Shown here: positions 11,977 through 59,363 of the stretch, one piece after another
Layout: each line of letters opens with the position of its first letter
Position numbering within the stretch: position 1 is the first letter of the stretch
From: Guillardia theta CCMP2712
Taxonomy: Eukaryota; Protista; Cryptophyta
NCBI RefSeq assembly: GCF_000315625.1
Contig: NW_005434634.1
Coordinates: 210,531 to 274,530, forward strand
Length of the DNA: 64,000 nucleotides
Reading direction: 5' to 3'
The notes under the pieces: generated by a model
The model's database searches: none
What the model saw: only the letters and a program-made list of their open reading frames with translations
What the model was told of the DNA's origin: nothing
Made by a program: the position numbers and the translations under genes

Positions 11977-12982
11977 GATGCGAGATTGATGTCTACAAAG
12001 ATTCGAAGGTGTATCCAGTCTCGCACATACACTTACTCTTCATTACCGGACATTCAGGAGGAGAGGAGTCTGTCAGCAAAATTCAGGAAATCAATGAGAT
12101 GAGTACGAATTGATCTTCATGGAAAGCGATCTTATATTTTCTTGGCTCGCATGTTCTGCTACATGGGAACGTTCTGCTACATGGTTCCCATGTTTGTCAA
12201 TGTTCTCGGGTGTGGACACTGTCTTGCACATTTCCTAGAAGAAAGATCTCTGCTCATGAAAACCCAGCCACTTCGCACCCAGCAGGTTCTTTCTGTACTG
12301 GAGCTTGTCTAACTACCTTGATCGGACTTTAAGCATCATCGTTTGTCTAATGAGATGACTATCCTGTACCTCTAGCTACTGCTTCTGCTCCCGAACCTCT
12401 TCCTGCTCCTTACTGTCCCCTTCAAAACATCGTTGAGCAAGCGATTTCGCCATTTTCTTCCACCCCCCCACTAAAACACATTACCCCATACCTAGAGGTG
12501 ATCCTTCAAGGACCCACCCTTGCAACCAAGCAATGTCACCCCTACCCACAAAATTTGCCCCCCATCACAAGAGGACCCTACTGATTTGCGTTTTACACCA
12601 TAAGTACCCTCAATTATACTCTAATACAAGGGGTCATCCATAGATTTGTAAATGACCCATGGAGTTCCATTCGGGGTACCCCCGTTATGATTCGGAGGCA
12701 TACTACCCCTACCTGGTATACACCCCTACCAGGCATCCCAACCCCACTACCGCTGTCTGCTGATGAAGCTCGGGGGACATTGAGGCGGGTCCAGATCGAA
12801 CCTACCGACATGGAGGGTAGTTTTAGTATGAAGAGGGGGTAGTCTTTGTATAGGACCTAAGCAGTGTGGTGGGGTAGATTTGAGTTGGTAGGGGTGGGTG
12901 GGGGACCTGGGGGCGCAATGAGTCGGGGAGCCATGCACATTTCACGATGACATGTAGTCTACGTAGTTCATAGCGATGAGTT

Positions 12983-13494: not shown

Positions 13495-16400
13495 TCAGCG
13501 AGGAGATTCTTCAATCGAGATTGCCACCTGCACACAGATTAACATTCCGAAGAGAAAGTGCGTGAAGGATGGGAGAAGATAAGAAACGAGGAAGAGAGAG
13601 GAGGAAATCAAGAGGAAGAGGAAATAGGAGGATACTTGTTTCCCACAGCGGTGTCTTCGTCTGCCTCTACCTTCAAGCGCAACCGAAACTGATCGCTGGG
13701 ATGTGTGGAAGCTTTCATAATCTCTCTCATCCTGGGGACCGTTGAGAAGGAGGGAGGCAGAAGGGAGGCAGAGGGTTGGGAGGAGGAGGAGGAGGAGGAG
13801 GAGGAGGAGGAGCTTGATGATGATGATGATGATGAGGAGGAGGAGGAGGAGCTGGAGGAGGAGTGGGGGGATGGAGGAGGAGTCAAGAAGAACACACATC
13901 ATCGTCGCATATGAAGACGGCGGTAGGATGAAGCTGACAATCAAAGCTTTCCACTTCCCTTCTCCCCCTGCTCCAGGCAGAAATATCACATGGAATGGAG
14001 ATGGATGGAGAAAGAGAAAGAGGGAGAAAATTTACCGCATTGGTCGTGTCCTTCAAACGCCCGCTGGAGGTCTTGCATGTGGTGAGATTCTGAGGTCGAC
14101 AGGAAGAACAAGATGATCTGGAGGATGGGAGGAAAAGGAGGAAGAGGAGGAGGAGGAGGAGGATGAGCAAAAGGAAGGCATCCAGCAGCAGAAGCAGCAG
14201 CAGCAGCAGCAGCAGGAGCAAGTGGAGAGGGAAGAGAACAACCCCAGTCTCTGTTATTGTATGTAACTATCTGCCAGCGCACATTCTTGGGCTTTATGAC
14301 AAGACTCCTGCAATAAAAACGGATAAGAGAGAGAAAGAGAGACTGGGAAAGGAGTTATAGAATGGAGGAGAGAAGAAAGAGGATGGAGGAGGGAGGAAGA
14401 GGGTGGGGAGGGAGGAAGGAGGAGGGAGGAAGGAGGAGGGAGGAAGGAGGAGGGAGGAAGGAGGAGGGAGGAGTAGAGATCAGACTCGAGATCTCTTATC
14501 ATGGATTGCCTCCAGGATGGGGAAACCTGAATGAGCATCGATGAGATGACTTCTTGCCTTTCTGAAACTCTCGCTTCATTCCATCCTTCTCGATCTGTTT
14601 CACTTGTCATGCGCGAACAATGATCTCTTCCATCAATTAAACTTTCATCGTCCCCAATAAGCAATTTCAGAACGAGGGTGGAGGGGGAAGGGGGTGGGGT
14701 ATGTTAGGCAGAAGAGATTCCAACCAGTCGGCGCACGAAAGTTTTCAGTCCGTTCTTGGGAAGAACCGGATAAACCTCCTCGTCAACCATTGGCAGCACA
14801 ACTTCAGAGATGCTGCCAACATCATCATCTTCGCCTCCTCCCAAGCAGCACCTCTGCAGCACCCGAAAGCTGCTTCCTTTTCCTCCTTCGCGGTCACAAA
14901 GTGAATCTCAGGAGCGTTGGAGTTGCTGATGTTGAACCGCATCGTGTTCTCCCCGTCCTGCGCTTCCAGTATCAGTTCCTTCTCCTCTCCTCCTCTTCTT
15001 CCTCTCCTCTCTTTCCGCCCATCTCTACCTATGCTTTCCTCTCTCCCATCGTTCTACTTAAAGGTTCTTATCCCCCTCCCCTTGCCCCTCCCCCTGCTCC
15101 TGCTTCTACTTTTCCTTCACCTTGGTATAGGAGGAGAAGTGACTTGTTAGGATCGCCTCGGACTTGTTCCTATCTTTACGGACTAGGACGATATCTCCCT
15201 CTACCGCATGCTCCATGCTCATCCGTCTTGCCCGCTCTGACGCCATCAGGTTCCACACCCTGGACCAGTACGCGAACTTGAAAAGACGAGCATGCGGCCT
15301 GCGGCTCACTCAAAAGGTGGTTCAAACTTGATACAAGTTTGAAGTTGAGACGAGGATGAGGAGGTAGTGGGAGCAAGATCATGTAGGACAGAGCTGCTCA
15401 CATAGAGAGCGCTGCCTCTTTTGCGGATTTGCCGTCCTTGAGCGCCTGCAGCAGCACCCGCTCGTCATGGCAGTAGCCCGGCATCAGCTTCAGCGCCTCA
15501 TCCACGTCCTTGTGCTTCGCATACATCAGCTTCGCCTTCCTCTCGTTGGGGCTGCAGCTCAAGGACGGAGGACGGAGAGTCTCGGAGACGGCGCTCTCCC
15601 AGTCTTCCTTGCTCAGCAGCTTTCCGACCGCGATGGACGGCATCATAGAAGCGGCACTTCAATCGCTGTCAGTGGAAGGAGAACAGGAGCAGGAGGAGCA
15701 GGAGCGGGAGCAGGAGCAGGAGGGTCATGGAAGGAGAAGCCACGGAGCAGAAGGAGGAGCAAGGGAAGAGAGGATCAGACAAGGAAAGTATGATATCACC
15801 TATTTCCAAATCTCTGATGCCCGAAGTAGTTGATAAAACCTCTCCTCGAAATCTCCTCCATCGTTTTGTTGAGCATTGAAGGTTCCCTGAGCGGTCTGAT
15901 ATGGCGGAGGAGGATTTCGAAACGATTTCCTCCATGCTGTCCGAACCGCAGAGGCGACTCGACATACTTGAAGTTGCCAAGGAGTACACCCTTCATCTTC
16001 CCATCGTTCAAGCCCAGCAGGCGGGAAGGAGCGATGCCGTAGGAACGAACCTCCTGCTCTGTGATACCGCTCTTGTCCTTCAGCCCCGCGAAGGTGAAGC
16101 TTCGTGCGTTGACCTTGAGGTAGGACGCAATCTTGTTGACCAGTGTTGTCGTGTCCCATCCTGACTTGGCGAGGATGAAGCTGGCAGAAGAAGAAGCTTG
16201 TAAGCTTTCAAGGGTGAGAAGGAGGTAAGAGAAGGGAGTTGGAAGGCAGAAACGAAGGCAAGAAAGGTCAAGAAAGGCAAACTTACCTCAGGTACTTCTT
16301 CTCCTCCACTTTTTCTATCCCACCGCAGGTCGCCAGTGCTCTTGCTCGCTGCTTGAACCACGTTTGATTCGCAGTCATTGTCAGGGTCCGCGAACCTTCG

Positions 16401-17247
16401 GAAGCCTGGATAGGCAGTGCGAAGGAAACCTTGAGGAATGGGAAGAATCGTGCAAAATCTTTGTCAGCCCCGCTGGGATCTCTGCTCCCGATGTTGACTG
16501 TACATCTCTGGAGCTCCCCAGCACTTCCTTCTCCTGTCGTGAAGTTCTTGAAGACCTCGGAAGCAAACAGGAACGCTCTTCTAGCAACGTCCTTGCCAAA
16601 GTGCGGCTTTAGGGCGTAAAAGCCCGCATCCTGGTTGTCTAGCTCATCCCGGAGGGGCCAAGGGCGAGGAGGGAGGGAGGCAGCATCAGTCAGCAGCACA
16701 GGAACCTCCTCCTCCAGGCGCATCTCGTTCACTCGGAAGTCAAACCACCGGGCCTTCAGTAGCCCCCCCAGCCCAGGAGCGCCGGTGACGTACTCAGTTA
16801 TGCCCACGTCATCATCGCTGCTCTTCTTCTCCTTGGTCCACTCGATGTAGTCTTGGAGGGAAGAGTACTTCTCCCTCTCCAGCCCAGCTCCCTCGAAGTC
16901 ATACAGCGAGGGGTCAAGCGCGTTGCACGTCTGCCTGCTGCAGAGTTCCTTGAGGACGACTTCCCGGGATTTGTCAGCCATGATGTTGCCTTGCGACATG
17001 ACGCGGATGGTGCCCGGAGCTCGTTCATCTCTCTTGCCTTTCCCTTCTTTCTGATTGCGCGGATGTCGTTTTCTTTCTTCGATCCCTCCTTCTTTTGCTT
17101 CCATTTCTTCAACCTCGGTTTACCTCCACGAAGTCGCACTACGCCGGAGTCCCGATGCCGCGCTTGGAGCCCAGTCGCTTCATAACGTGCATTGGCGATG
17201 CTGAGGAGGATCAGGAGAGCGAAGAGAGTTCTTGCCGACGCAGTCAT
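13495..17247 (-). CDS. PUS7: TruD/Pus7-family pseudouridine synthase with signal peptide and RLRGG leader, multi-exon
   Basis: DVGITEYV..GLLKARWFDFRVNE, FTFAGLKDK (catalytic Asp), GNRFEILLR, GFINYFGHQRFG, AYWSRVWNLMASER, VEGDIV, FILPPSSYATM. N-terminus MTASARTLFALLILLSIANA..VVRLRGG followed by a Lys-rich stretch, joined to the catalytic frame by an intron of about 40 nt near 16949-16995. Confidence 0.9.
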
Positions 17248-18481
17248 GTCGCTATCCCGACTCTCCAACTTTTCAGCATTTCTCCCAAGGCATGCCTCCT
17301 CCTTAGATTCTCACTCGCTGGCTTGTGCTACCTCCACCCTCCTCCTCCTCTCCCTCTCGCTTCCCGCCTTCACTCTCTTTCATCGCCCTTGTCAGCCTGC
17401 ATGCCCTATGGTCGCATCGCATCCTACTATCTTCCATGGCTGTCCTACTTTTAGATCTCCTGATCGCCTACTTTTCAAAAATCAAGTTCACCCGGCGGCC
17501 GTACTGTCGGGCCGGCCCTATCGGGCCCCGAGCCGAAGGTCAGTCACTGAGCTATATAGTGGTAGGCGGCGGACATAAAAGTGTGGTAGTACCAGTAGTA
17601 GTAGTGGTACTTTGAGTAAAAGTAATAGTAGTAGTACCCTCATAAGGAGCTCTTACAGACACCCCACCCGTAGATACGACCTTCCTATTGGGTGTACTCA
17701 GTGGGTGGGTCACATAAGACCACAAAGGTCTGATGGGGTGACATAGGGTGGGGTACTTCTCGACGGGGGATTAGGAGGGGGTGTCAATAAGTATTGCCAC
17801 TTTGCGGTGGTGGATGCGGGGGCGATGCGAGGAGGGGTAGTTTCCTATGGATTTCATTGTCATTTTAATTAGTAACTCGTGGGGGTAGTAACATAAAGGG
17901 ACGTGATCCGACAAGTAGCAACCTTGGTTGTAGCGGTGGAGTGGTGGGTAGGGAAAGGTAAAACGGTGGGGTGATATTTGTTTTGATAGTGGTTATTCGG
18001 GGGTGGGGTGGTATGTCCTCACAAATGATCGAAGAGACCAGGTTTTAAAGAAATAAAACATATTCAGTACTGATTTTTAAAACTTGAACCACAAAAATAT
18101 AACAAATATGATGAAAGTACCCTATTTGTTTTAAATTCCCTTTATAATGTTGGATTTTCAGCGGACACATATTGACCTCCTATGTTATTTCACCATTTAA
18201 TAAATGTTTATTATTTCCATACTGGTACATTACAATATTTCCTTATACTAATATATATAAAATAACCAGACTTGAATAGATTTTCTTTCAGTACTGATTT
18301 ACTATATTCATTATATCTTATCGAAAAAGTATTTTAGTTGTTTTAAACATTTGTTTCGCGATTCCAGCAATGGCACGAGCTTTGCGGCGCTGGTTCGGCG
18401 GTATGGCGGAGCTTTCCCCATAGGAGGAGAGATTTTCGTCCCCACAATTGAGAAACGTCTTTCCTCTGTAACTTTGACAAG

Positions 18482-19707
18482 ATGGAAAGCAGCAATCTCG
18501 ATCAGGATATGCGCAACATGGCCATTGACGATGCCAGAGACGCTGCAGAACTGTTCAAGGAGTTCTGGGGGGGTAGTCAGGTGGATGAAGATTTTACGAA
18601 TGAGAATGTGCAGTTGGAGGAGATGGCGTACGAGTCTATGTCATCCCAAGCCAGGGAAGAGGAGGAGCAGAGCTCTCCAAAGTTCAAAGTTTTCCGGCCC
18701 CACTCCGGAAAGGGCCAGAGCAGAACAGGGGGAGGGAGACATGCTTTTGCATGCCCTCTATGGCGGGCCAAGGATGTCATTCTCAGCCAGCTTCTTGAAA
18801 TTCAACAAGATCGATCGAGAATGCTGCTAGAAGAGACAGAGCTGGTGAGGATTGAAGTGCGGATATGTAGCTTCGATGTGGAGGATGCGATGCTATGGCT
18901 CAGGTCCCAGCACGAGTTCCCCAAGGTGTTCTTCCTCAACCCTGAGAGGTCGCACATAGCAGCAGGTGTTGGATCGGCTCATCTGGTGAGCGGGGAAGGA
19001 GATCTGCAGAGGCACCTGCTTCCCGAGGGCACTCCAGCCTGTTTCCGATACTACGGAGGGTCGCGATTCGATGCCGGAGCCAGGGTTGGGAAGGAGTGGC
19101 AGGAGTTTGGCGGGCATTACTTCGTGCTTCCTCAGATTGAAATTTTCTACTCTAACTGTGCCAATGCACAAGATGCGACGAAGAGTTTGGGGGAGGTCAG
19201 GCGGCATGCAAACTCTATCACGGATGAGTTCATTATTGGGGTGAACGTCAGGAGGAGGGAGGATGGAGATTGGGTCGAGCCGCTTGTGAAGGCCATCAGT
19301 GCAGTGAAACAGATGAATGTAGTGTTGAGCGAGGAGCGGGACCTCCCGAAGCCGAGCTCGATGAAGGACGGCTCGAGTTACGAGCACTGGAAGAGCTCAA
19401 TCGAATCAGCGCTGGAGGAGCTCAAGAAAGGGGCAGAGCTAAGGAAGGTGAGAAACATGTTGGTGCTTGTGCCTTCGTTGCTGAAGTCACTCGGCAGGTT
19501 GTGCTGTCTCGGAACTTCTTCGTCGAGTTCTCAACGGAAGTGGAGCCGATGGACCTGCTGCTGAAGCTCAAGTATCACCAGGGATACCTCTTCTGCCTTC
19601 AGCCCACACCTGGCTCTGCCTTCTTGGGATGCAGTCCAGAGCCTCTCTTCAAGATCTCTCATGACATCATAGAGACCATGGCGATCTCTGGCACGAGGGT
19701 TAGCACT

Positions 19708-19756
<49 letters not shown>

Positions 19757-22700
19757 TCTCCTTCTCTTGCCCCTGTTCCTCGTTCTGCCCTTGTCCTCCC
19801 TCTTCCTTTACACCCTGTTCCTTTGTCATCTCTTTCTATCTTTCTTTGTTTGATCAGAGTCACGAATGTTGGATGTGAATTGACATGCTTTTACCTGTTT
19901 TTTTTTTTTTTTTTCTTGTGGGTTTTCGACGAGCTTGCATTCATGCTCGCCTCTCCGTTCCCCCTCTGACCTCCTGTTATCCTACAGCCCCGAGGGCAGT
20001 CAGCCGAGCAAGACGAGGAGCTGGCAAAGGAGCTGCTTGCGAGCGAGAAGGACAAGTACGAGAACGGGGTCACGACCAAGTACATTCAGGAGCAGCTGGC
20101 CAACGTGGCTGAGGATGTGGAAACGTCGGAAATCTACGTGATGAAGCTCAGGCACGTGCAGCACATCTGTCGCAAGATCAGAGCGAAGCCATCCTCCAAG
20201 GCTGCCACCCCGATCGAGCTCCTCCTTACCCTGAACCCAACGCCTGCTGTGTGCGGTGAGTCCCGGCCGGTGGCGACCAGGTTCATCAGGAGCGTGGAGG
20301 GGTTCGATCGAGGCTTCTTCGGGGGGCCTGTAGGGTTTGTTTCTTCTTCCGTCTGCGAGTTCCTGGTGGCGATCCGCTCGGTACTCTGCAAGCCCAAGAT
20401 GCTGCACGTGTACGCAGGAGCAGGCATCGTGCCAGGGTCTGACCCAAAGTCAGAGTGGGAGGAGACGGCGTTCAAGATGAGGAACATCCTGCAGCTGTTC
20501 GCGAACCCTCCTCGTCCTCTCTCCTCCCTCCCCAACATCAACATGCTCTGGGCTGTGCTCACTGTGGAGGAGCTGTGCCGGTGTGGAGTGACTGTCTTCT
20601 GCCTGTGCCCGGGCTCCAGGTCGACTCCTCTCGCCGTTGCTGTCTCCTGGAACGCCAAGGCGACGTCAGTTGTCATGCACGATGAGAGGAGCGCTGGCTT
20701 CTACTGCGTGGGATACGCACGAGCGAAGAGGAAGCCCGCTGCCTGCATTGTCACCTCCGGCACAGCAGTGGCGAACCTGCTCCCCGCTGCAGTGGAGGCC
20801 TCACAGCAGGGCCTGCCGATGCTCCTCCTGACTGCCGACAGGCCGTTCGAGCTACGGGACAACGGGTCGAACCAGACGATCGAGCAGGCAGGAATCTTCG
20901 GGCGCTACGTCAGGTGGAGCAGGGACCTCTGCTGCCCCTCCGACCAGATCCCCGCCAACGTCCTCCTCTCCGACGTCGACTTCGCCGTTCATCGCGCCTC
21001 CTCCTCGCCTCGTGGCCCCGTCCACCTCAACTTTCAGTTCCGGGAGAACCTCGCCCCTGACGGCGGGCCCGTCCGCGACAACCCGCCGGGCAACCCGATC
21101 AGCAGCACGTGGAGCAGGGCGTGTATCGCCTCCCTCAACATGGCCAAGTGGGAGCATTCGGCGCTGCCTCATACGCTGTATCCCTCCTCCTCCTCCCACG
21201 TCGAGGTCCCAGCAGAGGTCTTGAGCTCCATGGCGCGTGCGAGGAGAGGCCTCGTCGTCGTCGGCAACCTCTTCACAGCAGAGGACATGGCGACCGTCGG
21301 GTGGGTCGCGGCTGAGCTATGCTGGCCCGTGTGGTGCGACGCTCAGTCGGGGGGCCGTTGGGACTTCGGGCCGTTCGGAATGCGAGGAGTGAGCATGATG
21401 GACCAGATGCTGACCAACCAGAGGGTCAGCGGGGCCCTCCGGCCTGATTTCATCCTTCAGTTTGGGGAGAGGCTGGTCAGCAAGCGCATCCTCTCCCTTA
21501 TCTCCTCCTGCTGCTACAGCGACCGCTGCTCCTACGTGGTTGTCTCCGATGCCCCTGGGAGGCAGGACCCCTCCGCTATAGTCACCCACTACCTCTCGTG
21601 CTCTCCTACCGACTTCGGCAAGCAGCTGTCAAGGTGGATGCAGCACAACAGGTCCGTTCCTTCATCCTGCTCTCTCCCCACTCCCTCACCCTCCTTCCTC
21701 CTCCTCCTCCGCATCATTATCGACATCTCCCCTCGTTTGTGCTCATGAATGCAGAGACATGACTTGGCAGCAGGATCTATCCTAGCGATCTCCTTCCCCT
21801 GGAGAAGATGTCGGAGCATGCGAGGACGGCCCTGTGGTCGTCGCTGTCGGGCTACAAGGACCTTGAGGAGCCGCTCATTGCTCTCCGTTGCTCCGAGAGC
21901 CTCGCAAGAGGACGCGCTCTCTTCGTCTCGAGCTCCATGCCCATCCGAGACGTCGACATGTTCTTCCATGCTGCCCTCTCCCGCGAGCGACCGGAGATCG
22001 GATGCAACCGAGGCGCCTCCGGCATCGACGGCATCGTCTCCTCCGCGCTAGGGTACGCTGGAGGCAGGGGTCGACCGCTGACCCTCCTCCTCGGCGACAC
22101 GGCAGCGCTCTACGACCTCAGTGCCATCCGGCATGTACCGGACTGCCCGCATCCTGTGGTGCTGGTGATTGTGAACAACGGGGGGTGCGGCATCTTCAGG
22201 TTCCTGCCCATCGCCCAGCATGAGGAGATGATGGAGAAATTCTTCATCAACTCCCACCAGATCGACTTCGAGAGCCTCGCTCGCTCGTTCGGCATAGACT
22301 ACATGCACGCCGCTACTGCAGGTTGGCTCCTCCTACCTTGCTGCTGACCTCCTCCTCCCCCCCCTCCCCTCTCCTCCCTCCTTCCTCCTCGTCCTCCCCC
22401 CCCTCCCCCTCGTACTCCTCCTCCTCCTTCATCACCTCCTCCTCCTCAACCTCTCGTAACGACCTCTCCCTCTATCCGTTAGTGCGCTAGTTTTGCTCCT
22501 TCTTCTTTTCTCCCTACACACACGTACTCCTCTCCTGCTTGCCTCCCTCGCTCAGCTCCCCCTTGCTTCCCCTCCTCTTCCAGTGCTGCCAGTGACTCCG
22601 ACCTCCAGCGGAGTTCGACTCCTGCCTCCACCATGCCGAGACCTCGGGCAAGCACGTCCTGCTGGAGGCTCGTACCTCCTCCGACCGTCTCGTTCAGGTT

Positions 22701-25700
22701 CACCGCGACATTGCGGCAGCCGTCAGCTACTCAGTCGACCTCTTCCTCGAGCACTTCATCCAGACCTCCTGGATCTGGCACGGGGACCGGGACAAGCCTG
22801 TCCTCCTCCTCCTCCATGGCTTCCTGGGCTGCAAGGAGGACTGGGACCCGCTAGTCCCCGCCCTCCTACAGGACGGCACGTGCTCGTGCCTCGCCGTCGA
22901 CCTGCCCGGTCACGGAGATTTCGCGTGGAAGCAGGGGGGCATGTCTTCCCAGCTGGCCCTGTCGTGGGAGGTCAGCTGCTTCCTACTGGACATGCTGCTG
23001 CAGAGGCTGGGCGTGTCATCGTGTGTGCTCGTGGGATACTCGATGGGGGGTCGACTCGCCCTCAACTTCGCGCTGAAGCATCCTGCGCGGGTCAAGAGCA
23101 TGTGCATTCTTAGCGCGCACCCTGGGCTGGAGAGCAGCGAGGAGAGGTTTCAGCGGGTGTGGGCGGACCGGGCAAGGGCGGATGAGCTGAGGAGGCTGGT
23201 GGAGGAGGAGGAGGAGGAGGAGGAGGAGGGGATGGGACGGGTGAAGCAGGAGGAGTGGAGGAGATGGTTGATGGAGTGGTATGGCCAGTCGCTGTTTGGG
23301 GAGATTGTGAAGAGCGAGAAGTTCCCGAAGATTTTGGAGAGGTAAGAACAACGATGAAGATGATGATGATTGCGACGCTGATGAATGATTTTGACATGAC
23401 AAAGATGAAGCTTTAAGAATGATGATGATTTGGATGACGATGAAGATGATGTTTGTAATTGAGATAATGATAGTGATTCTTTCATGGTTCTCAGTTTGAC
23501 TCCTCATCTTGTCTCTTTGCTCCTCCTTGTCCTGCTCATCTCATCCCTTCTTCCGCTCTCTCACCATTTCCTCAGGAGAAGGCGGGGAAATCCGAAGCAC
23601 CTGGCGGAAGTTATGGAGAACTGCAGCGTCGGGCGTCTATCAAGCGCATGGAACTTGTTTGAGAACTCTGGAGCTCCTATCCTGTACTTGTACGGAGAGA
23701 GGTGAAAATCAGCCCCTTGCCCTCCTCCTCCTCNNNNNNNNNNNNNNNNNNNNNNNNNNNNNNNNNNNNNNNNNNNNNNNNNNNNNNNNNNNNNNNNNNN
23801 NNNNNNNNNNNNNNNNNNNNNNNNNNNNNNNNNNNNNNNNNNNNNNNNNNNNNNNNNNNNNNNNNNNNNNNNNNNNNNNNNNNNNNNNNNNNNNNNNNNN
23901 NNNNNNNNNNNNNNNNNNNNNNNNNNNNNNNNNNNNNNNNNNNNNNNNNNNNNNNNNNNNNNNNNNNNNNNNNNNNNNNNNNNNNNNNNNNNNNNNNNNN
24001 NNNNNNNNNNNNNNNNNNNNNNNNNNNNNNNNNNNNNNNNNNNNNNNNNNNNNNNNNNNNNNNNNNNNNNNNNNNNNNNNNNNNNNNNNNNNNNNNNNNN
24101 NNNNNNNNNNNNNNNNNNNNNNNNNNNNNNNNNNNNNNNNNNNNNNNNNNNNNNNNNNNNNNNNNNNNNNNNNNTTCCCCCCCCCCCCCCCTCTCTCCCT
24201 CGTCGTTCTCTTTCATCTCTCACTCTACTCCCTCTTCTGCTGTCTTCACTCGTCCAATCCCTCTTCCCTCCCCCCTCCTCTCCCCTCCCCTCTTGTCCCC
24301 ATCTTCCTATTCCTCTCCTCTCTCCCCCTCCTCACTCCTCTTGTCTAGGGACACGAAGTTCGCTGCACTAGCCGACAAGCTGCGGGCTCGATCTGGCTCG
24401 CACGTGCTCGTGCATGCTATCCAGGGATGTTCGCATGCAATAGTGGAAGAGCAACCAGATGCCACCGCACGGGAGATCGTCAGGTAGGAGAGGGAGACTG
24501 AGGAGCGGGAAGAGTGGGGAAGGAGCAGGAGACAGCAGAAAGTGAGGGCAGAAGCTGAAAGAGGAGGAGGTGGAGCAGCAGAGTGCAGGAGCAGAGGGAG
24601 GGGGAGGGAGAAACAGTGGTGGAGGAAGAGGTCTTGCGCAGAGGAGCAGGAGCGAGCTGCTCAGTCGCTGATCGCCTTGTCAGGTTTCTCTCGACTGATT
24701 CTCTTCCAACAACCGTTGGATCGTCAGACTGCGACAACCTCATGATCGCCTCGGTGCAGGTGAAGAAACCCCTCTCCTCCTACCTCGCCCGAAGGCTCCT
24801 CCTCCTCCTCCTCCTCCCACCGCCGCACACCGCCCCCGCCCCACCGCCGCTGCCGCCGCCGCCACCACCACCGCCACCTCTTCCTCCTCCTCCTCCCACC
24901 TCCTCCTCCTCCTCCCACCTCCTTCTCCACTCTCCTCCTCTCTCCCTCCCTGCCGCCGCCGCCGCCGGTCCAGCTGACCTGCCTTCAGGTCCGGCGGATG
25001 GACGTGAAGCTCAAGGACCCGCTGCAGCTGAGCCGAGGAGACGCGATGACGCTCAGGAAGGGCTTCTTGATCGAATGCATCAGCATGGGAGGGTAAGACA
25101 GACATGCTCCATACACTAACCTCCTCCTCCCTCCTCCCTCCTCCTCCTCCCTCCTCCTCCTCCCTCCTCCCTCCTCCTCCTCCCTCCTCACCTCCTTTCT
25201 CTCTCCCTCCTCACCTCCTCCTCTCTCTGCTCCCCTTGTCCTCGTCCTCTCCTCCCCGGCATTCCTCCTCCTTCTCCCCTCCCTCCTTATGCTCCTCCCC
25301 CACTCCTTTTTGCTTCTTCCTCCTCCTGTCTCCCTCTGTTCTCGACCTCGCTGACGTCCTGGCAGGCATGTGGGAGTGGGTGAATGTACTCCCTTGCCAG
25401 GGTTTCATGAGCAGACGTATGAGGAGGTGGAGAGACAGATTCTAGATGCGTGCAAGGTGAGAGTTTCCTTTCTTCCTCCTCCTCCTCCTCTTCCCCTCCT
25501 CTCCCTTCCTCCTTCTCCTCCTCTCCCCTCCTCTTCCTCTCCCCTCCCCTCCTCCTCCTCCTCTTCCCCTCCCCTCCTCCTCCTCCTCTTCCCCCTCCCC
25601 CTCCTTCTCCTCTCACATTATCTCATCCTACTTTCATAGTGTCTCTGTGGGCGGATCGTTCCTCGTGCCATCGCGAACTTCGACGGCTCCTTCACCCGCT

Positions 25701-28159
25701 GGCTCTTCGGAGAGATATCGTGAGATCTCTCCTCCTCCTCCTCCTCCTCCTCCTCCTCCTCCTCCTCCTCCTCCTCCTCCTCCTCCTCCTCCTCCTCCTT
25801 TTCCCTCCCGTGTCCTCCTCTCCTCTCCCTCTTCTTCCTCTTCCTACTCCTCTCTGTCGCTCTCCCCACTTCTTTCCTCTTCTCTTTCCCTTCCTTCCCT
25901 GCATCACCTTTCTCCTTCCACCCCCTACATACCCCTCCAGCTCTAACCCCAGCTGCCTCCAGCGACGTGGAGAAGTTCGCGCAATGGCACTTCGACGTTT
26001 CCCAGGTTGGCCGTCAGCTCCCAGCTGAGAGCATTTCCCCCGTCGTCCTGGCGGCGCTCGAGATGGCACTAGTCCAGCTGGTCTCTCATGCTCTAGAGCG
26101 GCCCCTCTGCCGTGTCCTCTCGCCCCCCTCCTCTGGGCACAGCAAGGTCCTGCCCCCGCTCGTCCCCAGCTGAGCGATCCTTACTGACACGCTGAAGCAG
26201 CTCCGCTCATTCGTCAGCCTAAACGGCTTGATGACGCGAGGAGAAGTCGAGCTGCCCCGTTCCTGCAGCTCTAGAGTTGTCAAGGTCAGTAGCCTCCTCC
26301 TCCTCCTCCACTGTCTCGTCCTCCTCCTCCTCCTCCTCCTCCTCCTCCTCCCTCCTTCCCCTCCCCCACCTCCTCCTTCTCTTCCTCTTGTCTTTCTCCT
26401 ATCTTTCGTGTGACCCGCTGGATCAGGTGAAGGTTGGGGGAAAGGAGGACGTCAAGAAGGAGGCGGAGGAGCTGAGGGATCTTGTCAAGAAGGCGAAGGA
26501 GGAGGGATGGAAGTTGCGGCTAGACGCCAACAGGTGCTGGGACCTCGAGCAGGTGAAGTCGAGGCCTCTTCTCTCTCTCCTCTCCTTCCCTTCCCACTCG
26601 TGTCCTCCTCTTCATCTCCAGTCCTTGCCCTCAAGTTCTTCCCGCTCGTCCTTTCCTCTTCCGCTGCTCTCCTTCCTCTCAACTTGTCCTAGTCTACTAC
26701 TCCTCTTCCTTCTCTTCCTCATCCCTCACCATCCCCTTCTACCTCCCCTCCCTCCCTCCCTCCCTCCCTCCCTCCCTCCCTCCCTCCGTCTTCTCTTTTC
26801 TCTTTCCTGAACTCCTCGCAGGCTGTTCAGTTCGTCTCCAGCATCGGCTTTGACAACCTGAGTGTCATCGAGTACATCGAGGAGCCGTTGACGGACTTCC
26901 GGCAGCTCCCGCGCTTCTTCCAGCAGACAGGCCTCAGCTACGCGCTTGACGAGTCTCTGCTCGACGACAGCTGGGAGGAGCTGGCGCAGGACGCGGGGCT
27001 GGCGGCGCTTGTGCTGAAGCCGACGCTGCTGGGGGGTCTAGAGCGCTGCTGCCAGCTGAAGCTGCGGGCGCGGGAGGGGGTGAAAGCGGTCCTGAGCTCG
27101 GCGTTCGAGAGCGGTCTGGCCCACTGCTTCTATGGCATCGCTGCTGGGGTTCTGCTGGACGTGGAAGAGGCGCATGCTCATGGGCTGTCGACGTTCGAGC
27201 GACTGGAGACGGATAGTCTCACTGTTCCGATGAGCCAGACGGTGAGAGACTCTCCTCCTCCTCCTCCTCTCCCCCTCCTCCTCCTCCTGCGGGTCAGCCG
27301 TAGACCCTCCGCAGCATCTTCGTCAACAACAACAAGCAGTCGTGGGCGAGCATGACCATGAGCGGCGTGATAAGGAGCGCTTCACCATCATCTGGTGTGA
27401 TCAGCCACTACTGGACTACTATATTAACATCCTCGTCGGCGGCCGCTCATCCCCGGCGGATAATGCNNNNNNNNNNNNNNNNNNNNNNNNNNNNNNNNNN
27501 NNNNNNNNNNNNNNNNNNNNNNNNNNNNNNNNNNNNNNNNNNNNNNNNNNNNNNNNNNNNNNNNNNTGCCCACGCCTTTTCTGGCACGAGGGGAGGCTCA
27601 CCGGACGCGCAAGATAGGCACCCACAGCACCGTCGACTTCGACCCCTTCGAGACGCATCTCCCCGTGCCCCCTAGCAAGCCGGCGAAAGCACCTCCTCCT
27701 CCCCCTCCTATCCCCTTCTTCCTCCACCCCCCACCACTCGGACTCCTCCTCCTCCCTCCTCCTCCTCCTCCTCCTCCCCTCCCTCCTCCTCCCCCCCTCC
27801 CTCCCCTCCCTCCTCCTCCTCCTCCTCCTTACTTGTTCCTTTCTCCCTCTCTCCCTCCGTCCTCTTTCCTGCCCTGCCAGCTGAGACGGCAACAGATGTG
27901 GAACGGGAGGATCGACATATTCAAGTGCGAACAAGAGTTGTTCAGCATTAAGGGGTGAGAGGAGGAGAGGAGAGCAGAGGATTGGTGATGAGAGGAGGAG
28001 GAGGAGGAGGAGGGGGTTGAGGGGAGGAGGAGGAGGAGGGTTGAGGGGAGGAGGAGGAGGAGGAGGAGGAGGGGGTTGAGGGGAGGAGGAGGGAGAGCGG
28101 GAGGGAAGTAACGCAAGGGCGGCAGGAACTTGAAGAAGTTTGACTTGATCTCCGACTGA
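18482..28159 (+). CDS. PHYLLO: Tetrafunctional phylloquinone/menaquinone enzyme MenF-MenD-MenH-MenC (PHYLLO-like, different domain order)
   Basis: MenF (about 18800-20500): YYGGSRFD..EWQEFG, K|VVLSR, GCSPE, AISGT, KDKYEN, PTPAVCG, IRS, YAGAGIV, EWEETAFK. MenD (about 20530-22700): CPGSRSTPL, DERSAGF, TSGTAVANL, TADRP, SMPIRD, NRGASGIDG, GD..ALYD, NNGG. MenH (about 22780-24480): HGFLG, DLPGHG, GYSMGGR, GE|RDTKF, SHAIVEE. MenC (about 24740-27950): GECTPLPG, K|VKVG, LRLDAN, YIEEP, ALDES, LKPTLLG, SSAFES. Final exon ..KG|NLKKFDLISD*. Confidence 0.9.
23734..24174. other. Assembly gap (441 N) inside a MenH-domain intron
   Basis: Run of N; the flanking exons join as GE|RDTKF. Confidence 1.
27467..27566. 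other. Assembly gap (100 N) inside a MenC-domain intron
   Basis: Run of N. Confidence 1.
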
Positions 28160-28491
28160 AGCTTCAAGACTGTACATATACCAACAAGATCTTGTAGAAA
28201 TGTGTTAAAGAGAAGAAACTACCAGTTCGTTTGTCTGCTCCTCCCTTGCTCCTCCCTGCCGCCTACTGCGTCCTTTCCTCCAGAACCCTCCCCATCCAGA
28301 CTCCTTGTCCCTCTCTCCCTCCGGCCTCCTTCCTCCTCATCCTCCTCCACCACCTCTCCTTCTTTTTCCCATCTTCCCCTCCTCTGTCCTCCTCCTCCTT
28401 CACCTTCAAATTAGATGCTTTACTATTAACTTGTGAATATCAGTATGTGTGTGTGGACATGTTCAAACTCGTTATCTTCCCTCCCTCCCTC

Positions 28492-31400
28492 TCATTCTGT
28501 TTGCGGTGTAGAACACTCACTATCCTTCGACTCTTCTTCAGCAATCAACTCCTCTGTCTTGGTCTCCACCGTTCGCATACACTCCTCCTCCTCCTCCCCG
28601 TCCTTTTCCTCCTCCTTTTCCCTGCTCTCCTCCCCTCTTCCACGTTCTCCTCTTTTCCCTCCACCTTGCAGAACCTGCCACTTCACCGTCAGCACCTGCT
28701 CTTGCGCTCGCAGCCAGCGTCTCTGCCTCCACCTCCTCTCTCTTCTGTATGCTCCAATAGTCCTCCCTCTGTCCTCCTCTCCCATCCTCTCCTGCTCCTG
28801 CTCCTTACCTCGTCCACATCCTCCTGTACTCAGCCTCCACGTTGCTCATCAACGCCTGGCCCGAGCAAAGGGGCGAGGAGAGTAGTCGGTCGCGCAGAGT
28901 GTCGCGGTAGCTGCGGATCCTCTCGGGGCTCCTGGCAAGCTGCACGGCGATGTCGCAGTACTCGTCCTCGTCCTTGGCGATCAGTTCGTGAAGCCCGACC
29001 TGCAGGAGAGGAGGGCAGTGAGGATCAGGGGAGGAGGAGAGTGGAGAAGGAGGGAGGGGAAAATGAAGACGATGCGTGAGAGGAGTGAGAGGAGTGAGAG
29101 GAGTGAGAGAAGGGGTGGGAAGTGGAAAGGAAGGAGGAGGAGGAGGAGGAGGAGGGAAGGAGGAGGGAGGGAGGGAGGGAGGGAGGAGGGGGGAGAGTTA
29201 CCTGTGTGAGCAGCGAGACGCCGACGTTCTGCGAGTGGGTCGCGTTGTCTCCACGTGCCTGTAGGGTGATGACAGGGACGCCCATCAGAAGAGCCTCAAC
29301 GGTCGTGGTGGTGCCGGCGTAAGGGAACGTGTCGAGAGAAATGTCCATGCGGGAGTAGGCGGCGAGATGCTCCGACGTGCTCGACATCACCATCTGCATG
29401 TCGATGCGATTCCTGGAGGAGAAATCAGCGGCTTTCTTGCAGATGGCAGAGGAGGAGAGAAGAAAGCGAAGGGAAGGGAAGAGATCTTGTCGGAAGGAAC
29501 AGTGGGAGGGAGGGGTTGTGGAGGAGGGGAGGAGGAGGAGGAGGAGCAAGGACTGNNNNNNNNNNNNNNNNNNNNNNNNNNNNNNNNNNNNNNNNNNNNN
29601 NNNNNNNNNNNNNNNNNNNNNNNNNNNNNNNNNNNNNNNNNNNNNNNNNNNNNNNGGAGGAGGAGGAGTTTCTCGGGAGGATCGACCTGGAGACGCCGAA
29701 CTCTGATAGAGCTGAGACACAACTCTCTCTGACTTGACTTGCAGCGAAGGCTCGTGACTTGAGGAGAAGCCGGGAATCTGGCAGAGACGCAAGAATTTTC
29801 CCCCATAGGTTGACAACACCGCCATTCATCTGCAAAGGAACCAAATGAGATGGCTGAAGGAGCGGGAGAGGTAGGATGGGGAAGTGAGATGAGAGGAGGA
29901 AGGTGGAGAGGAGGAAGGGAGAGCAGTAGCAGAGGAAAGGAATGGGGAGGAGGAGGAGGAGGAGAAAATGAGGGGAAATGGAGAGCAGTAGAGCAGAAGT
30001 TTGAAGAAGGGGAGGAGAGAAGTGGGAGGGAGAAGAGATGCAGGAGGGAGGAGGGAGGAGTTGGAAATACCTTTGCTACGTTGTTGAAGCTTCCAAAAGT
30101 GACGTAGTGCAGGGCCTCGCAGGGGGGTGGGGCAACGGGTCCCGCTTCCTCTGCTGGGGTGTAGCAGAGGAAAGAGTCGGGAAGCCGGACAAGCTCCTCC
30201 TGCTTCATTTCTCAGGAATGGGAGGAAGGAGGAGGAGAGAGAAGCGATGAGAAAGGGGCAGAGATACGGGGAAGGCCCTAACAGTGAGGAAAGGAAGCTG
30301 AGAAGGACAGGGAGGAGGGAGGAACGCGGTCTTACGGTGAACTTCTGGGTCGTGTCCAGAGGGTCTGCCTTGTCGTCTGTGAACCTGTAGTCGATGGTGT
30401 CCAGGCCTGTCGTGTTGGGATACCCGATCCAAGAGACCTGACGAGAGAAGATTCAGCACTGGAGGGCGAGGAGCAAGGGATGTGTGGAAGACGATGAGGG
30501 ACGGAGATAGTGAGGTGCATGACGGGGAGATCAAGGAAGGAGGCAGGAGGAGGGAGAACGAGCGAGCCATGGAGGGCAGGCACCTGGACTGGAGCTGGAT
30601 GGAGTGCGAGGACATCGAGGCGGTTGGAAGCTGTGTGACCCGAGAGCTCAACGAGAATGTCAATCTGATCAGCCTCGATCATTTGCGCGACCTGCAAGCA
30701 GCTCAGCTGAGTGTTCTTGCCACTCCTCCCTCCACCTCCTCTATCCCTCCTCTCCCACCCTCCTCTCCCACCCTCCTCTGCCCCTTTCCTCCCTCCTCTC
30801 CCTCCCTCCCCCTTCCCTCCTCCCTCCCCAACCCCCCCCCCCCTGTCCTCCAGAACAGTCGTACCACAGCTGGAGGCTTGCTGGCAATATTCACCCACGA
30901 GTCGGACATCTCGCGCAGCCTCCTCGTCATCACGTCCTCCTTGGTCGCGGCGTAGTAGCAAGTGACGTGAAAGTTTTCTCTGCTCCTGCACCTCAGCGCC
31001 GCCTCGAAGAAGTAGGCGACCGAGTGCTTGTTGAAGTCCGGGGAGATGTATCCGACCTTGATCTGCCTCTCCACCTTCTTCACATTCTTCCAGCTGTTCT
31101 TCTTCGGCCCTGCCTGCAACCGAATCTCCCTCCCCCACTGCTCGTGCGCCGCTGAGATCTCGTCCCGGCTCCTCGTCACCGAATAGTTCAGGGCCAGCAG
31201 TCTGCAGAAGCCATCGGGGCCAGTCAGCCAAGTTCCTGCGCACTCGGAAAGTTCAGTGCGGACCTGTTGTGGGCTGAGTTTGGGGCGGCAGAGTAGATCT
31301 CGAGGCTTTTCTCGTAGTAGTGGATAGCTTTCTCGGCATCTCCAGAGTCCTGGAAGAATTTTCCTGTAGGCACTAGTGAGGAAAGTCGTAACAGGAGAGG

Positions 31401-34033
31401 ATGGCTGACCAAGGTTGGTGTAAGCCGCCGAGTAGTTGGGATACACTTGCAAGGCCGCGTTGAAGTATGCGAAGGCGTCTTCCGGCTGGCAGCGCAGCTG
31501 GTCAGCTCACAGCTGACTGGATGGCAGGACGCGAGGAGGAGATCATGTTGAGAAATGCATGGAGGAGCGAGAGGAGGCGGAGGGTAGATGCAAATGGTTC
31601 ATCGCACCTGGCACATCATGGTGAAGACGACACCCATGTTGTTGAGAGCCTCCGGGAACGCTGGTTTGACTCGGAGAGCGGACTCGTAGCACTGAAGAGC
31701 ACGGGGAAGGTTGTCAAAATCCTTGTAGATGACCTGAAAACACAAGGAAGTCAACGGAGGAGAGTCATGGAGATGTCAGAGATCAAGAATCGCCTTACTC
31801 CGAGGTTGTTGTATGCTTCCGCGCATCTGGGGTTCATCTGAGTAGTGAGCTCGTAGCAGATGATGGCTTTCTCCGGCTCATTCTTCTCTATGTATGCAAC
31901 CCCGAGGTTGTACATGGCGTCAGCACTCTTGGGGTTGTAGAGCAGTGCCTGAAAACCGAGATATCAAACCAACTGGCAATGAAAACGTGCTCTACCTGTT
32001 TGTAGAAGTTGATGGCATCATCGATCATTCCTTGAGATTTGACAACTGAGATTGGACGAGGTTTCAGACGTCAAAAGAGATTCAGAGGCAAATGATCACC
32101 AGTCCCGAGGTCAGAGAGAGCAAGTGAGATGTTTTGCAGTGCAAGCTGAAAATTTGGATTGAGCTGGTCGATGACGTCAGGCCAAATTGAGAAGAAAGGT
32201 CACAGACCTCGAGACAAGCCTTGAACGACTCGATCGCCTCTTGAATCTGGTTCCTCCCCTTGAGGAGAACCCCGATGTTGTTGTGCGCTTCTGCGTTGAA
32301 CAGACGGTGAACTTGGCCAGTCAGAACACCATTGCATCTCACCGGCATATCTCGGACAGCATTCTAGCGCCCTCTTGTACTCCTGCGGAGAAATACTTCA
32401 ACACCATTCCATGTTGCATCATGGTTTCTCTCATACCTGTATAGCTTCGTCGACCAGGCCTCTTTCTGCCAACACGATCCCTTTGGAGCAGGATGTTTCA
32501 GTGAACGTAACAGGATCATTCAAGCAGCGGCAACCTAGGTTGTAATGACTTGGCGCATAGCCTTCAAACATTTCAGTGAGTACGAGGCGGCAAATCTCAG
32601 AAGATCAGAGAGCATACATGGGCAGATCTGTGAAGCTTCTTTGTACTTGAGGTACGACGCATCTCCCTAAACAGACGGAAACGCCCTCAAACCAGATATG
32701 ATCGACAAGCGGAAATGCTCAAAACCTGCCCGAGGAGTTTCAGTCTTGTCCCTTCATCTGTCAGCGCCGTTGCCAATCCCTTCAAAAATCCTCAGCTTCC
32801 TCACACAATCGAGAAGCAACTCCATACCTCCGCCGCAATGGTACAATTCGGGTCTATCGACAGGGCCTCCCGGTAGCTGCAGTGCAAGTCATGCAAGCAA
32901 GGTTTTTGAGATCACATATGACGGCACCATTCGATTCCCTCATTGAACTTCTTCTCCCTGATCTGCAAGCTCTTCCATGATTCCTGACCCTCCCCGCACA
33001 AGACGATCACCCGTAGAAGTCCAAGGTAACTCAGAGTGGTTGTGTTCCTCGGATCGAGCTCAAGAGCCGCTTCCATGGCCTGGAGTTCAGGAATGTAAGA
33101 GTCCTGCTAACTGCCAACGTTGTCATGAAGAAACCTCTGTCGCTGCTGGGTTTCTGCCCAGCTTGCCGAGCGAAATGGCTTTTCCTAGGGTAGCGCTCAC
33201 CTAGAGACCATGTGAGAAGTGTGACTGGCAATCGAGAGATACGTCTACCATGTCAACGTTCACTTCGTCTTGCGGCGTAGGAGGAGGAGTAGACAGAGCC
33301 TGGAGGGACCTTGAGGACCAGCCTGATCGAGATCTACAGTAACCTGCGAGCTCTCCGAAACCACTGGGGAGTCCGCCAAGGAAGTCATCCGTGAAATCGC
33401 GGCCTTATGATCGAGTCAGTCATCGCCCTCTCCCATCATATGTATGGCAATACTTCGTAGCAAAGAATCGCCTCCTCATGCTTGTCTTGATCGGCAAGTG
33501 CCCTGCGCAAAGTTACCTTGCGGACTCCTTCTACCTCGGTAGAAGCATGTCCCACCTGCCCCTGTTGATATAGTCCTGGGGCTTCATATGCTGGGCTTCA
33601 GCCAGGGGGACAAAGAGAGGAATCATCCTCAAGGATGGCTGAGTCACGTGGACCTCGTAAGGCCCTCCCTCACTACTCCCTGCAAATCTTCGAGGGAAGG
33701 TGAGAAATCTTGTAAACCGAGTCAGTCTGGTATGTTGACGAGGAGAAAGGGCATTAGACAAATTCAACGGCATCGCATTCTGTCTGCTATGATCTAAATG
33801 GTGTGCTCTTGAAACCTACAAACGATGCCATGATACTTCGCATGGACTGCACAAGAAACAAGTATAGTCGGGTGGGCCAATAAGTGTGCGTCTAGGTCAC
33901 AAGAGGGAAAGACACAGCTAACATCAGCAAGGAAAGACGGAAGGAACAGGAGGGCATGATCCTGATCGTAGGATGAGGTGTTGTTCTCGTCTCCCGTCTC
34001 TATCCTCTTGCTTCCTTCTTCCCTCCTTCCCAT
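28492..34033 (-). CDS. SPY: SPINDLY-type protein O-fucosyltransferase (GT41; TPR array plus catalytic domain), multi-exon
   Basis: TPRs (AEAHNNIGVLLK, ADAMYNLGVAY, CAEAYNNLG|VIYKD, EALNNMGV). RLLALNY, VGYISPDFNKHSVAYF, DILVELSGHTASNRL, PAPVQ|VSWIGYPNTTGL, TFGSFNNVAK, DISLDTFPYAGTTTT, HSQNVGVSLL are SPY-type rather than OGT-type motifs. The start (33600-34033) and stop are approximate. Confidence 0.9.
29556..29655. other. Assembly gap (100 N) inside a SPINDLY intron
   Basis: Run of N. Confidence 1.
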
Positions 34034-34489
34034 CACGCGCTCAAACCATCATGGAAGCTTTCGGGCCACACAAGATTTGGGTCTCGCCGAATATTTTGGT
34101 CACTTTCTAACAAACATTTTCAAAGTCACTGAGTCCATTTGAAAATGGTCTACCTCCTGCACATGCGGGAATAACGGACTGTAACGTTTTGTAACAAAAA
34201 TGGACGTTACATACCGTTACAACAATATACTGAACGCCGGTGCCACGGTGTTGCCTCTTGACTCGAGTCCGACAGTCTCACGGAGAATCTCAGTGATCTC
34301 AGTGATCGGCAAGCAGTGGGGTGAAAGAGATGATAATATCCCCAGTGACAAACTGAGCAATCTAACAAGGACAGAGGAGGAGGAGGACTCCGGGACTCCA
34401 AGCCTGAGGAGGACTGAGGAAGAGCGGCTTGAAAGCTTGAGAGCACTGCCGCAAGAGCGGCCCATTATGGTACCGTAGACCTTGTTACT

Positions 34490-58649: not shown

Positions 58650-59363
58650 TTACATCACGCTCTCCCTCGGACGATGAGTAACTGAGGTCTCAATGGACCT
58701 ATGCAACTCTTCCTCTTCTGCAGTCACATACCATTCGATGAAACTGGAGGAGAAGGGCGACACTTGCATCGACTTCAAGAAGACGTCGCGAGGGCCAATG
58801 TTGCTGGAGAGAGAGTTCCTTCGTTGTGTTGCTGTAACTTCAGGTCTTTCAAACCCAGCATTATCTGGTTGCTCGGCTGTCGAAGAATTGGTATCGTCAC
58901 TAATTTTCGTCTCTTCTCTTGAAAAATCTTTCGTTGACGAGTCAGGTGTAGAGGATTCTGTGGAAGATGTTGCAGACTCAGCCTCGTGTGGATCGGCCGC
59001 CATGGAATCTTCGCTCTCTACATCTTCACAACTCTCGTTGCCAGAAGAACAAGACTCTGACAATTGCTCATTCACCGCATTTCTGATATCCATTTGCGCA
59101 TCCTGACTATTTTGAGGAGAGGATACTTGCCCACGGCCTTCCTTCTGTCGGACATAGGGCCATTTCTTGATATCAAGCCTCTTGCACGCATTTTTCAGAG
59201 CCGTGAGAGAAATGCCAAGATGGTTTGCAGCTTCTCCTTGTCGCAGATGAAACAAAGCCATCACATCATCCTTAGACAGAAACAAAGCCCTTCTCCGCAC
59301 TGTTTCACCAGGCTTTGTCCTAGGATACACTTGAATTCTTCGTTGATTATCAGCAGGATGCAT
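58650..59363 (-). CDS. RWP-RK domain transcription factor (divergent KKWPY form)
   Basis: LSKDDVMALFHLRQGEAANHLGISLTALKNACKRLDIKKWPY; single 237-aa ORF with an S/E-rich tail. Confidence 0.85.
   Translation of the reverse strand: MHPADNQRRIQVYPRTKPGETVRRRALFLSKDDVMALFHLRQGEAANHLGISLTALKNACKRLDIKKWPYVRQKEGRGQVSSPQNSQDAQMDIRNAVNEQLSESCSSGNESCEDVESEDSMAADPHEAESATSSTESSTPDSSTKDFSREETKISDDTNSSTAEQPDNAGFERPEVTATQRRNSLSSNIGPRDVFLKSMQVSPFSSSFIEWYVTAEEEELHRSIETSVTHRPRESVM

Follow-up and report, generated by a model that had tools for sequence, protein, structure and literature searches.

We describe here a locus on the forward strand of a 64,000-nucleotide stretch of Guillardia theta CCMP2712 DNA (the window; positions 210,531 to 274,530 of contig NW_005434634.1, assembly GCF_000315625.1), and all coordinates given below are those of the window. 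The window is eukaryotic sequence (many introns, C/T-rich). Between 18482 and about 27958 on its + strand, the stop-free stretches and the profile searches revealed four modules, MenF, MenD, MenH, and MenC (F, D, H, and C hereafter), which occur in that order and retain intact catalytic motifs. The stretch very probably represents one nuclear gene, the cryptophyte orthologue of PHYLLO, whose product would be one polypeptide of ~1,900 residues in the order MenF-MenD-MenH-MenC. Such a protein would combine isochorismate synthase (MenF), SEPHCHC synthase (MenD), SHCHC synthase (MenH), and o-succinylbenzoate (OSB) synthase (MenC), and would lead from chorismate to OSB in the plastid, toward phylloquinone (vitamin K1).

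The gene model contains about fourteen introns, and canonical in-frame GT-AG sites are available for all of them, including those from 24483 to 24684 and from 24759 to 24974. The entire locus is collinear with a 1990-aa F-D-H-C protein, P0160, and a profile search of the 87.1-Mb genome identified it as the sole menD and OSB-synthase locus. Throughout, the homology searches were made exon by exon. The word content of sequencing runs was also sampled over 19970-23342: the runs that are RNA by guess contain 0.73-0.85 of these words and the DNA run 0.96, and the modelled exonic share is 0.87. The fit of the presumed RNA runs to the exon model is suggestive only.

The MenF module begins with exon 1 (18482-19447, +), which lies in a frame that is stop-free from 18452, is collinear with residues 57-313 of P0160, gives a weak match to TIGR00543, and ends at the donor AAG/gtgaga after 19447. 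Exon 2 (19498-19698, +; acceptor cag/GTT, donor AGG/gttagc) carries the MenF core with the VVLSR and SPE motifs and corresponds to positions 18-91 of the Chorismate_bind profile. Exon 3 (19988-21655, +, with an alternative 3′ end at 21651 among the splice options) provides positions 92-257 of the same profile and then continues into the N-terminal and middle domains of MenD (TPP_enzyme_N and TPP_enzyme_M_2; TIGR00173, 4e-93). The Chorismate_bind match is thus spread over two stop-free stretches, 19228-19875 and 19970-21745. Within the residues of the latter stretch, Chorismate_bind occupies 7-169, TPP_enzyme_N 199-307, and TPP_enzyme_M_2 391-551, and the menD model TIGR00173 matches it at 4e-93; since this one stretch carries all three domains, the F/D junction lies within a single exon. 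In the comparison with known structures, exon 3 matched MenD (2X7J, 3e-45) and also ICS1.

The MenF module is complete, covering Chorismate_bind positions 18-257 across exons 2 and 3 and TIGR00543 positions 178-348. Arabidopsis ICS1 (8W6V) was aligned contiguously, with its residues 274-333 on exon 2 and 343-509 on exon 3. An earlier note on this DNA had proposed both a full-length MenF and a MenF/MenD junction inside one exon, and the ICS1 alignment and the frame that stays open across both modules in 19970-21745 confirm these two proposals. MenD is closed by exon 4 (21805-22321, +), which contains the C-terminal TPP-binding domain (TPP_enzyme_C, matched in the stop-free stretch 21763-22344; TIGR00173 positions 347-433) and has a unique in-frame donor, CAG/gttggc, after 22321. 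Its 5′ boundary is uncertain, with in-frame acceptors between 21771 and 21825. All three TPP domains (PF02776, PF16582, and PF02775) are present in the MenD module, and the TIGR00173 score of 313 bits is above the cut-off of the model. Exon 4 shows 89% identity to P0278 of Hanusia phi.

The transition from MenD to MenH takes place in exon 5 (22609-23341, +; TIGR03695 menH, 6.6e-36; matches to the MenH structures 4GDM and 2XMZ). The stop-free stretch 22596-23342 first contains a MenD tail and then the alpha/beta-hydrolase MenH with the motifs HGFLG, DLPGHG, and GYSMGG, the last of which, bearing the nucleophile Ser, was aligned to GHSMGG. The first part can be assigned to MenD because the initial 62 residues of exon 5 correspond, in alignments, to the end of MenD in relatives of both the F-D-H-C and the F-D-C-H order. 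P0278, a transcript-derived protein of Hanusia phi (416 aa, 85-89% identical), contains TPP_enzyme_C and MenH in one open reading frame (ORF) and shows the exon 4/exon 5 junction as predicted. The run-through from D to H, which the earlier note had placed in one exon at about 22609-23341, is located by the splice analysis at exactly these positions.

The rest of MenH is divided between two exons by the first of two assembly gaps. Exon 6 (23576-23701, +; donor GAG/gtgaaa) encodes the middle of MenH, ends in LYLYGE plus a split codon, and matches the C-terminal end of the public model GUITHDRAFT_72176 at 100%; its 42 residues gave only spurious PPR matches in the PDB. Exon 7 (24349-24483, +; acceptor ttgtctag/GGA, donor CAG/gtagga) encodes the MenH C-terminus with RDTKF and the His motif GCSHAIVEEQP, which aligns with the His motifs of alpha/beta-hydrolases. 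Gap 1 (441 N, 23734-24174) lies between them, in the intron 23702-24348. Exons 6 and 7 are in phase via a split Arg codon, and when their peptides were aligned separately to the MenH modules of the relatives, exactly one residue, that of the split codon, separated the two matches in 30 of the 43 homologues matched by both. Because the flanking halves of MenH follow each other correctly in order, strand, and phase and show this spacing, gap 1 is intronic and no coding sequence is missing from it; MenH is continuous across the gap.

These observations bear on the possibility that the F-D-H-C order was produced by a wrong scaffold join at an N gap. The stretch does contain two gaps of estimated length. 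However, gap 1 parts the two halves of one MenH domain in the manner just described, the D-to-H transition lies within an ungapped exon, and MenC, through its last catalytic motif, is contiguous sequence after MenH, between both gaps. Gap 2 is located after MenC and so cannot alter the domain order. Moreover, the same order was found in 74 relatives (see below). Domain reordering at the gaps was not detected, and an assembly artefact can be practically discounted as the source of the order.

The MenC module was traced over six exons on the + strand. The first (24974-25092; donor AGG/gtaaga) encodes the N-terminal capping strands and gives collinear matches to P0160, P0159, and P0066. The second (25366-25456) carries the GVGECTPLPGF motif, with a MenC_N match of 0.0012 and 54-62% identity to relatives. 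The third and fourth exons, within 25973-26284, are placed roughly at 25973-26113/26146 and 26198-26284; several in-frame GT-AG options exist, the exact small intron between them is uncertain, and neither the family scans nor the relatives gave a significant match to these exons when searched exon by exon. The fifth exon (26427-26552; acceptor cag/GTG, donor CAG/gtgaag) carries the LRLDAN metal ligand, with weak matches to OSB synthase models and matches to the relatives; the Lys-x-Lys motif KVKVG is formed across the splice at its start (VVK^VKVGG). The EEP, DES, and KPT catalytic motifs are found in the sixth exon (26822-27241), which matches NF003473 at 3.3e-24 and TIGR01927 at 3.4e-20, the former match lying in the stop-free stretch 26693-27352. 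This exon aligns to residues 173-272 of E. coli OSB synthase (1FHU), and its three motifs fall on the same motifs there. The Lys, Asp, Glu, Asp, and Lys residues of the enolase superfamily are accordingly all present downstream of MenH, and the position that the earlier note gave to the MenC motifs (KVKVG, DAN, EEP, DES, and KPT), namely last, is borne out by the NF003473 match and the 1FHU alignment.

Both ends of the gene are less clear. At the 3′ end (27242-27958, +), gap 2 (27467-27566), 100 N of estimated size, follows the last conserved MenC block, and ~700 nt are left before the candidate stop. The candidate last exon is 27881-27955, followed by TGA at 27956-27958; its resemblance to MenC C-termini is weak (E 0.16 or worse). 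No Pfam family was found on any frame of 27246-28411 when the SRPBCC/polyketide-cyclase-like fifth module of some relatives (COG5637; PF10604 or PF03364) was looked for. At the 5′ side, an ORF with a hydrophobic start (MAVLLLDLLIAYF) was observed at 17436-17612 (+), in the 1.4-kb space between a divergent TruD-like gene and exon 1. This ORF could be a candidate for a missing signal-peptide exon of PHYLLO; neither splice nor homology support was found for it.

The remaining issue for the gene model is the passage from MenH to MenC. In the predicted path, exon 7 ends in AREIV at the donor CAG/gtagga, and the acceptor before 24684 opens a linker exon (24684-24759, +; in-frame GT-AG on both sides) that would supply the end of MenH (RFL), ~15 aa of linker, and the opening residues of MenC, ending in MIASVQ; the donor after 24759 would then be joined to 24974, where MenC starts with LTCLQVRRMDVKL. 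A TAG lies at 24485-24487, in overlap with the GT donor of exon 7. Instead of one gene, two or three adjacent genes may be considered, in which the TAG at 24485 terminates an F-D-H protein and MenC has a gene of its own, starting from the ATG at 24742. Such a division would agree with the position of the TAG directly after the MenH frame and with that of the ATG, which precedes the linker exon's end by 6 codons. It would also agree with the JGI/NCBI models 72109, 72176, and 72208, which stand as separate models, and with the module sets that are split in nature (F-D and H-C separate in red algae, and H-C alone in haptophytes).

Nevertheless, the three models are labelled "partial" and 72176 ends exactly at gap 1. 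The D/H junction within one exon means that at least F-D-H is one gene. H and C are never separated in any relative having both modules: all relatives with the H-C order carry the two in one ORF (the 74 F-D-H-C and 6 H-C proteins of the survey described below, together with the H-C proteins of Emiliania, Prymnesium, and Pyropia). The TAG overlaps a good donor, and an in-frame acceptor is available 200 nt downstream. Furthermore, the ATG at 24742 is the only one ahead of MenC, and a protein starting there would begin with MIASVQ at the first MenC strand; this start is disfavoured because it leaves no room for the presequence that a cryptophyte plastid protein needs. A division into adjacent genes is therefore unlikely.

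Several points weigh against the reading as a single gene all the same. The H-to-C junction is a prediction from in-frame GT-AG sites and from the relatives, and the linker exon is without homology support of its own. A retained intron after MenH would give an in-frame TAG. The public annotation consists of three separate partial models. When the search was seeded with the H-C protein P0046, haptophyte and red-algal H-C proteins were obtained, and none from cryptophytes; likewise, the comparison of the MenC exon with metagenome and transcriptome contigs gave distant relatives only (≤46% identical), without an H-C ORF from any cryptophyte. Gap 2 interrupts the 3′ end, and no N-terminal signal or transit peptide was recognized at the ATG at position 18482, which is followed by an acidic stretch. 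The single gene is still strongly preferred; the splice that joins H to C, both ends of the gene, the location in the plastid, and the activities of the enzymes are inferred.

The locus itself has been noticed before. A 2022 study (PMC9244630) listed a putative PHYLLO (ID 72208), a MenF (ID 72109), and a MenH (ID 72176) of Guillardia "in the same gene cluster", and left undecided whether the three are separate genes or one PHYLLO. GUITHDRAFT_72176 (hypothetical protein, partial) matches 22791-23342 and 23574-23702 at 100% identity, ending at gap 1. The interruption of the locus by two assembly gaps and about fourteen introns is a plausible reason for the three-way split of the public annotation. 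Our locus is identical to the "PHYLLO cluster" of that study, and the difference is that the present exon model merges the three models into one collinear reading frame. The F-D-H-C order (published in 2008) and the Guillardia locus (named in 2022) are therefore already known, and both carry little weight as discoveries. What is added is modest: a collinear, in-frame GT-AG exon model joining three partial published models. Its practical value is in annotation, since the merged PHYLLO gene model answers the question left by PMC9244630; both statements are subject to cDNA confirmation.

The neighbouring genes were assigned by Pfam and are all on the - strand: a beta-amylase (GH14) at 11308-12039, a TruD/Pus7-type pseudouridine synthase at 15799-17119, a glycosyltransferase with TPR and GT41 domains (OGT/SPINDLY-like) at 29025-36235, an IPT/TIG-domain protein at 37101-39188, and an RWP-RK domain protein at 58653-59384. 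The PHYLLO gene is flanked by the TruD gene on one side and the GT41 gene on the other. Guillardia theta is a marine alga; as a separate observation, sampled words of the PHYLLO gene were found at 0.42 in a freshwater metagenome (run X12) and at 0.07 in a lake-water metagenome (run X18), for which the possible sources include contamination, spiked-in DNA, or a close relative from fresh water. About 13 kb upstream of PHYLLO, an intron-rich gene for an ANL-family acyl-CoA ligase was observed at 3100-5700 (- strand). The MenE models match it at 7.6e-9 (NF002966) and 3.9e-6 (TIGR01923), no better than the models for long-chain fatty-acid CoA ligases; the protein designated Gt_MenE in PMC9244630 has the ID 139711.

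The module order was then compared across algae and plants. Using the MenD part of the protein from Vitrella as the query, we collected 126 proteins and mapped the four modules on each of them by phmmer. They comprised 74 F-D-H-C, 26 F-D, 8 F-D-C-H, 3 D-C-H, 7 F-D-C, 6 H-C, and 2 F-D-H proteins; because the survey was seeded from an F-D-H-C protein, these counts are not frequencies and show wide spread only. The named F-D-H-C proteins are from Vitrella, Durusdinium, Amphora, Mayamaea, and other diatoms, and the named F-D-C-H, D-C-H, and F-D-C proteins are from green algae and plants. The brown alga Scytosiphon was mapped as F-D-C, yet its protein has alpha/beta-hydrolase Pfam domains. All named F-D proteins (P0163-P0209) are red-algal (Gracilariopsis, Chondrus, Porphyridium, and Timspurckia), and the H-C proteins (P0001, P0113, P0407, and P0412) are from the red algae Rhodosorus and Pyropia and the haptophytes Prymnesium and Emiliania, the Rhodosorus gene being alone on its contig. 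Gross, Meurer and Bhattacharya (2008; PMC2412073) had described menFDCH in green algae and a moss, and in diatoms menC after menH with an extra 3′ module (menFDHC-duf); PF10604 or PF03364, found in 11 listed F-D-H-C relatives, corresponds to this diatom "duf". Thus, F-D-H-C is the usual order for algae with red-type plastids, and in this respect the Guillardia gene is ordinary.

The closest full-length relatives of the MenF/MenD part are P0160 and P0159 (46-48% identical). Both are encoded by intronless F-D-H-C genes on large eukaryotic contigs (L001 2001-7973 and L002 2001-8366), between a JmjC gene and GH9 genes. In a FastTree analysis of the exon-3 region (MenF/MenD), the Guillardia sequence formed a long branch in the vicinity of F-D-H-C proteins, Scytosiphon, and Vitrella, although this position was not firmly supported; a separate green clade (13 rows, support 100) left it outside.

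The earlier note had regarded the arrangement as unusual and had inferred a chorismate-to-OSB fusion assembled independently in the Guillardia lineage. The order is indeed unlike the F-D-C-H of plants and green algae, and is the same as the order of the reactions and, menB aside, as that of the E. coli operon. However, the F-D-H-C order was published for diatoms (PMC2412073), the Guillardia cluster was described in PMC9244630, and the survey found this order in chromerids (Vitrella), in dinoflagellates (Durusdinium), in many diatoms, and presumably in brown algae. In addition, the junction from the D tail to H aligns residue by residue with the F-D-H-C relatives P0159-P0162, and this agreement speaks for a junction of common descent. 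A fusion new to Guillardia is accordingly most improbable, and F-D-H-C turned out to be the order commonly documented for algae (74 of the 126 relatives), a finding that the note itself had named as decisive against its inference.

The separate F-D and H-C genes in red algae and the lone H-C gene in haptophytes suggest one of two histories, a joining of two halves into F-D-H-C or a splitting of F-D-H-C in the lineages concerned. We tentatively raise the possibility, which we hold to be somewhat doubtful, that the F-D-H-C gene of red-plastid algae came from the joining of the F-D and H-C genes still separate in red algae, independently of the green F-D-C-H. If this were true, at least two assemblies of PHYLLO would have drawn on the same operon-derived parts, and the D-H seam within one Guillardia exon could help to date the second fusion. 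The overall picture of the survey (separate F-D and H-C genes in red algae, H-C alone also in haptophytes, F-D-H-C in most algae with red-type plastids, and F-D-C-H on the green side) could be a starting point for work on the number of times that PHYLLO was assembled.

Finally, the Guillardia gene can be set beside the known systems. It is like the diatom PHYLLO in being a nuclear multi-module gene with the F-D-H-C order and a full-length MenF, and exon 3 shows 37-42% identity to the diatom-clade proteins compared. The diatom and eustigmatophyte-like proteins differ in having a fifth C-terminal SRPBCC/polyketide-cyclase-like module, which was not found in Guillardia by Pfam in the frames downstream of MenC. 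With the PHYLLO of plants and green algae, it shares the four modules, the presumed pathway role, and the nuclear coding of a presumed plastid enzyme. The work of Gross et al. in 2006 is said to have given the order F-D-C-H for plant PHYLLO, with MenF truncated in vascular plants. In the plant and green-algal proteins MenC is thus placed between MenD and MenH, whereas in Guillardia MenH directly follows MenD in one exon and MenC is last, as the contrast drawn in the earlier note had it. The two-gene set of red algae (F-D plus H-C) has the same F-D and H-C neighbourhoods, and the best match of the Guillardia MenC exon is the H-C protein of Rhodosorus (46%), but D and H are joined within one exon in Guillardia. 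In the E. coli operon menFDHBCE, the order of F, D, H, and C is likewise collinear with the reactions; there, each of the four has a cistron of its own and menB stands between menH and menC, whereas Guillardia carries them, in the same F, D, H, C order, in what is in all likelihood a single intron-rich eukaryotic gene.

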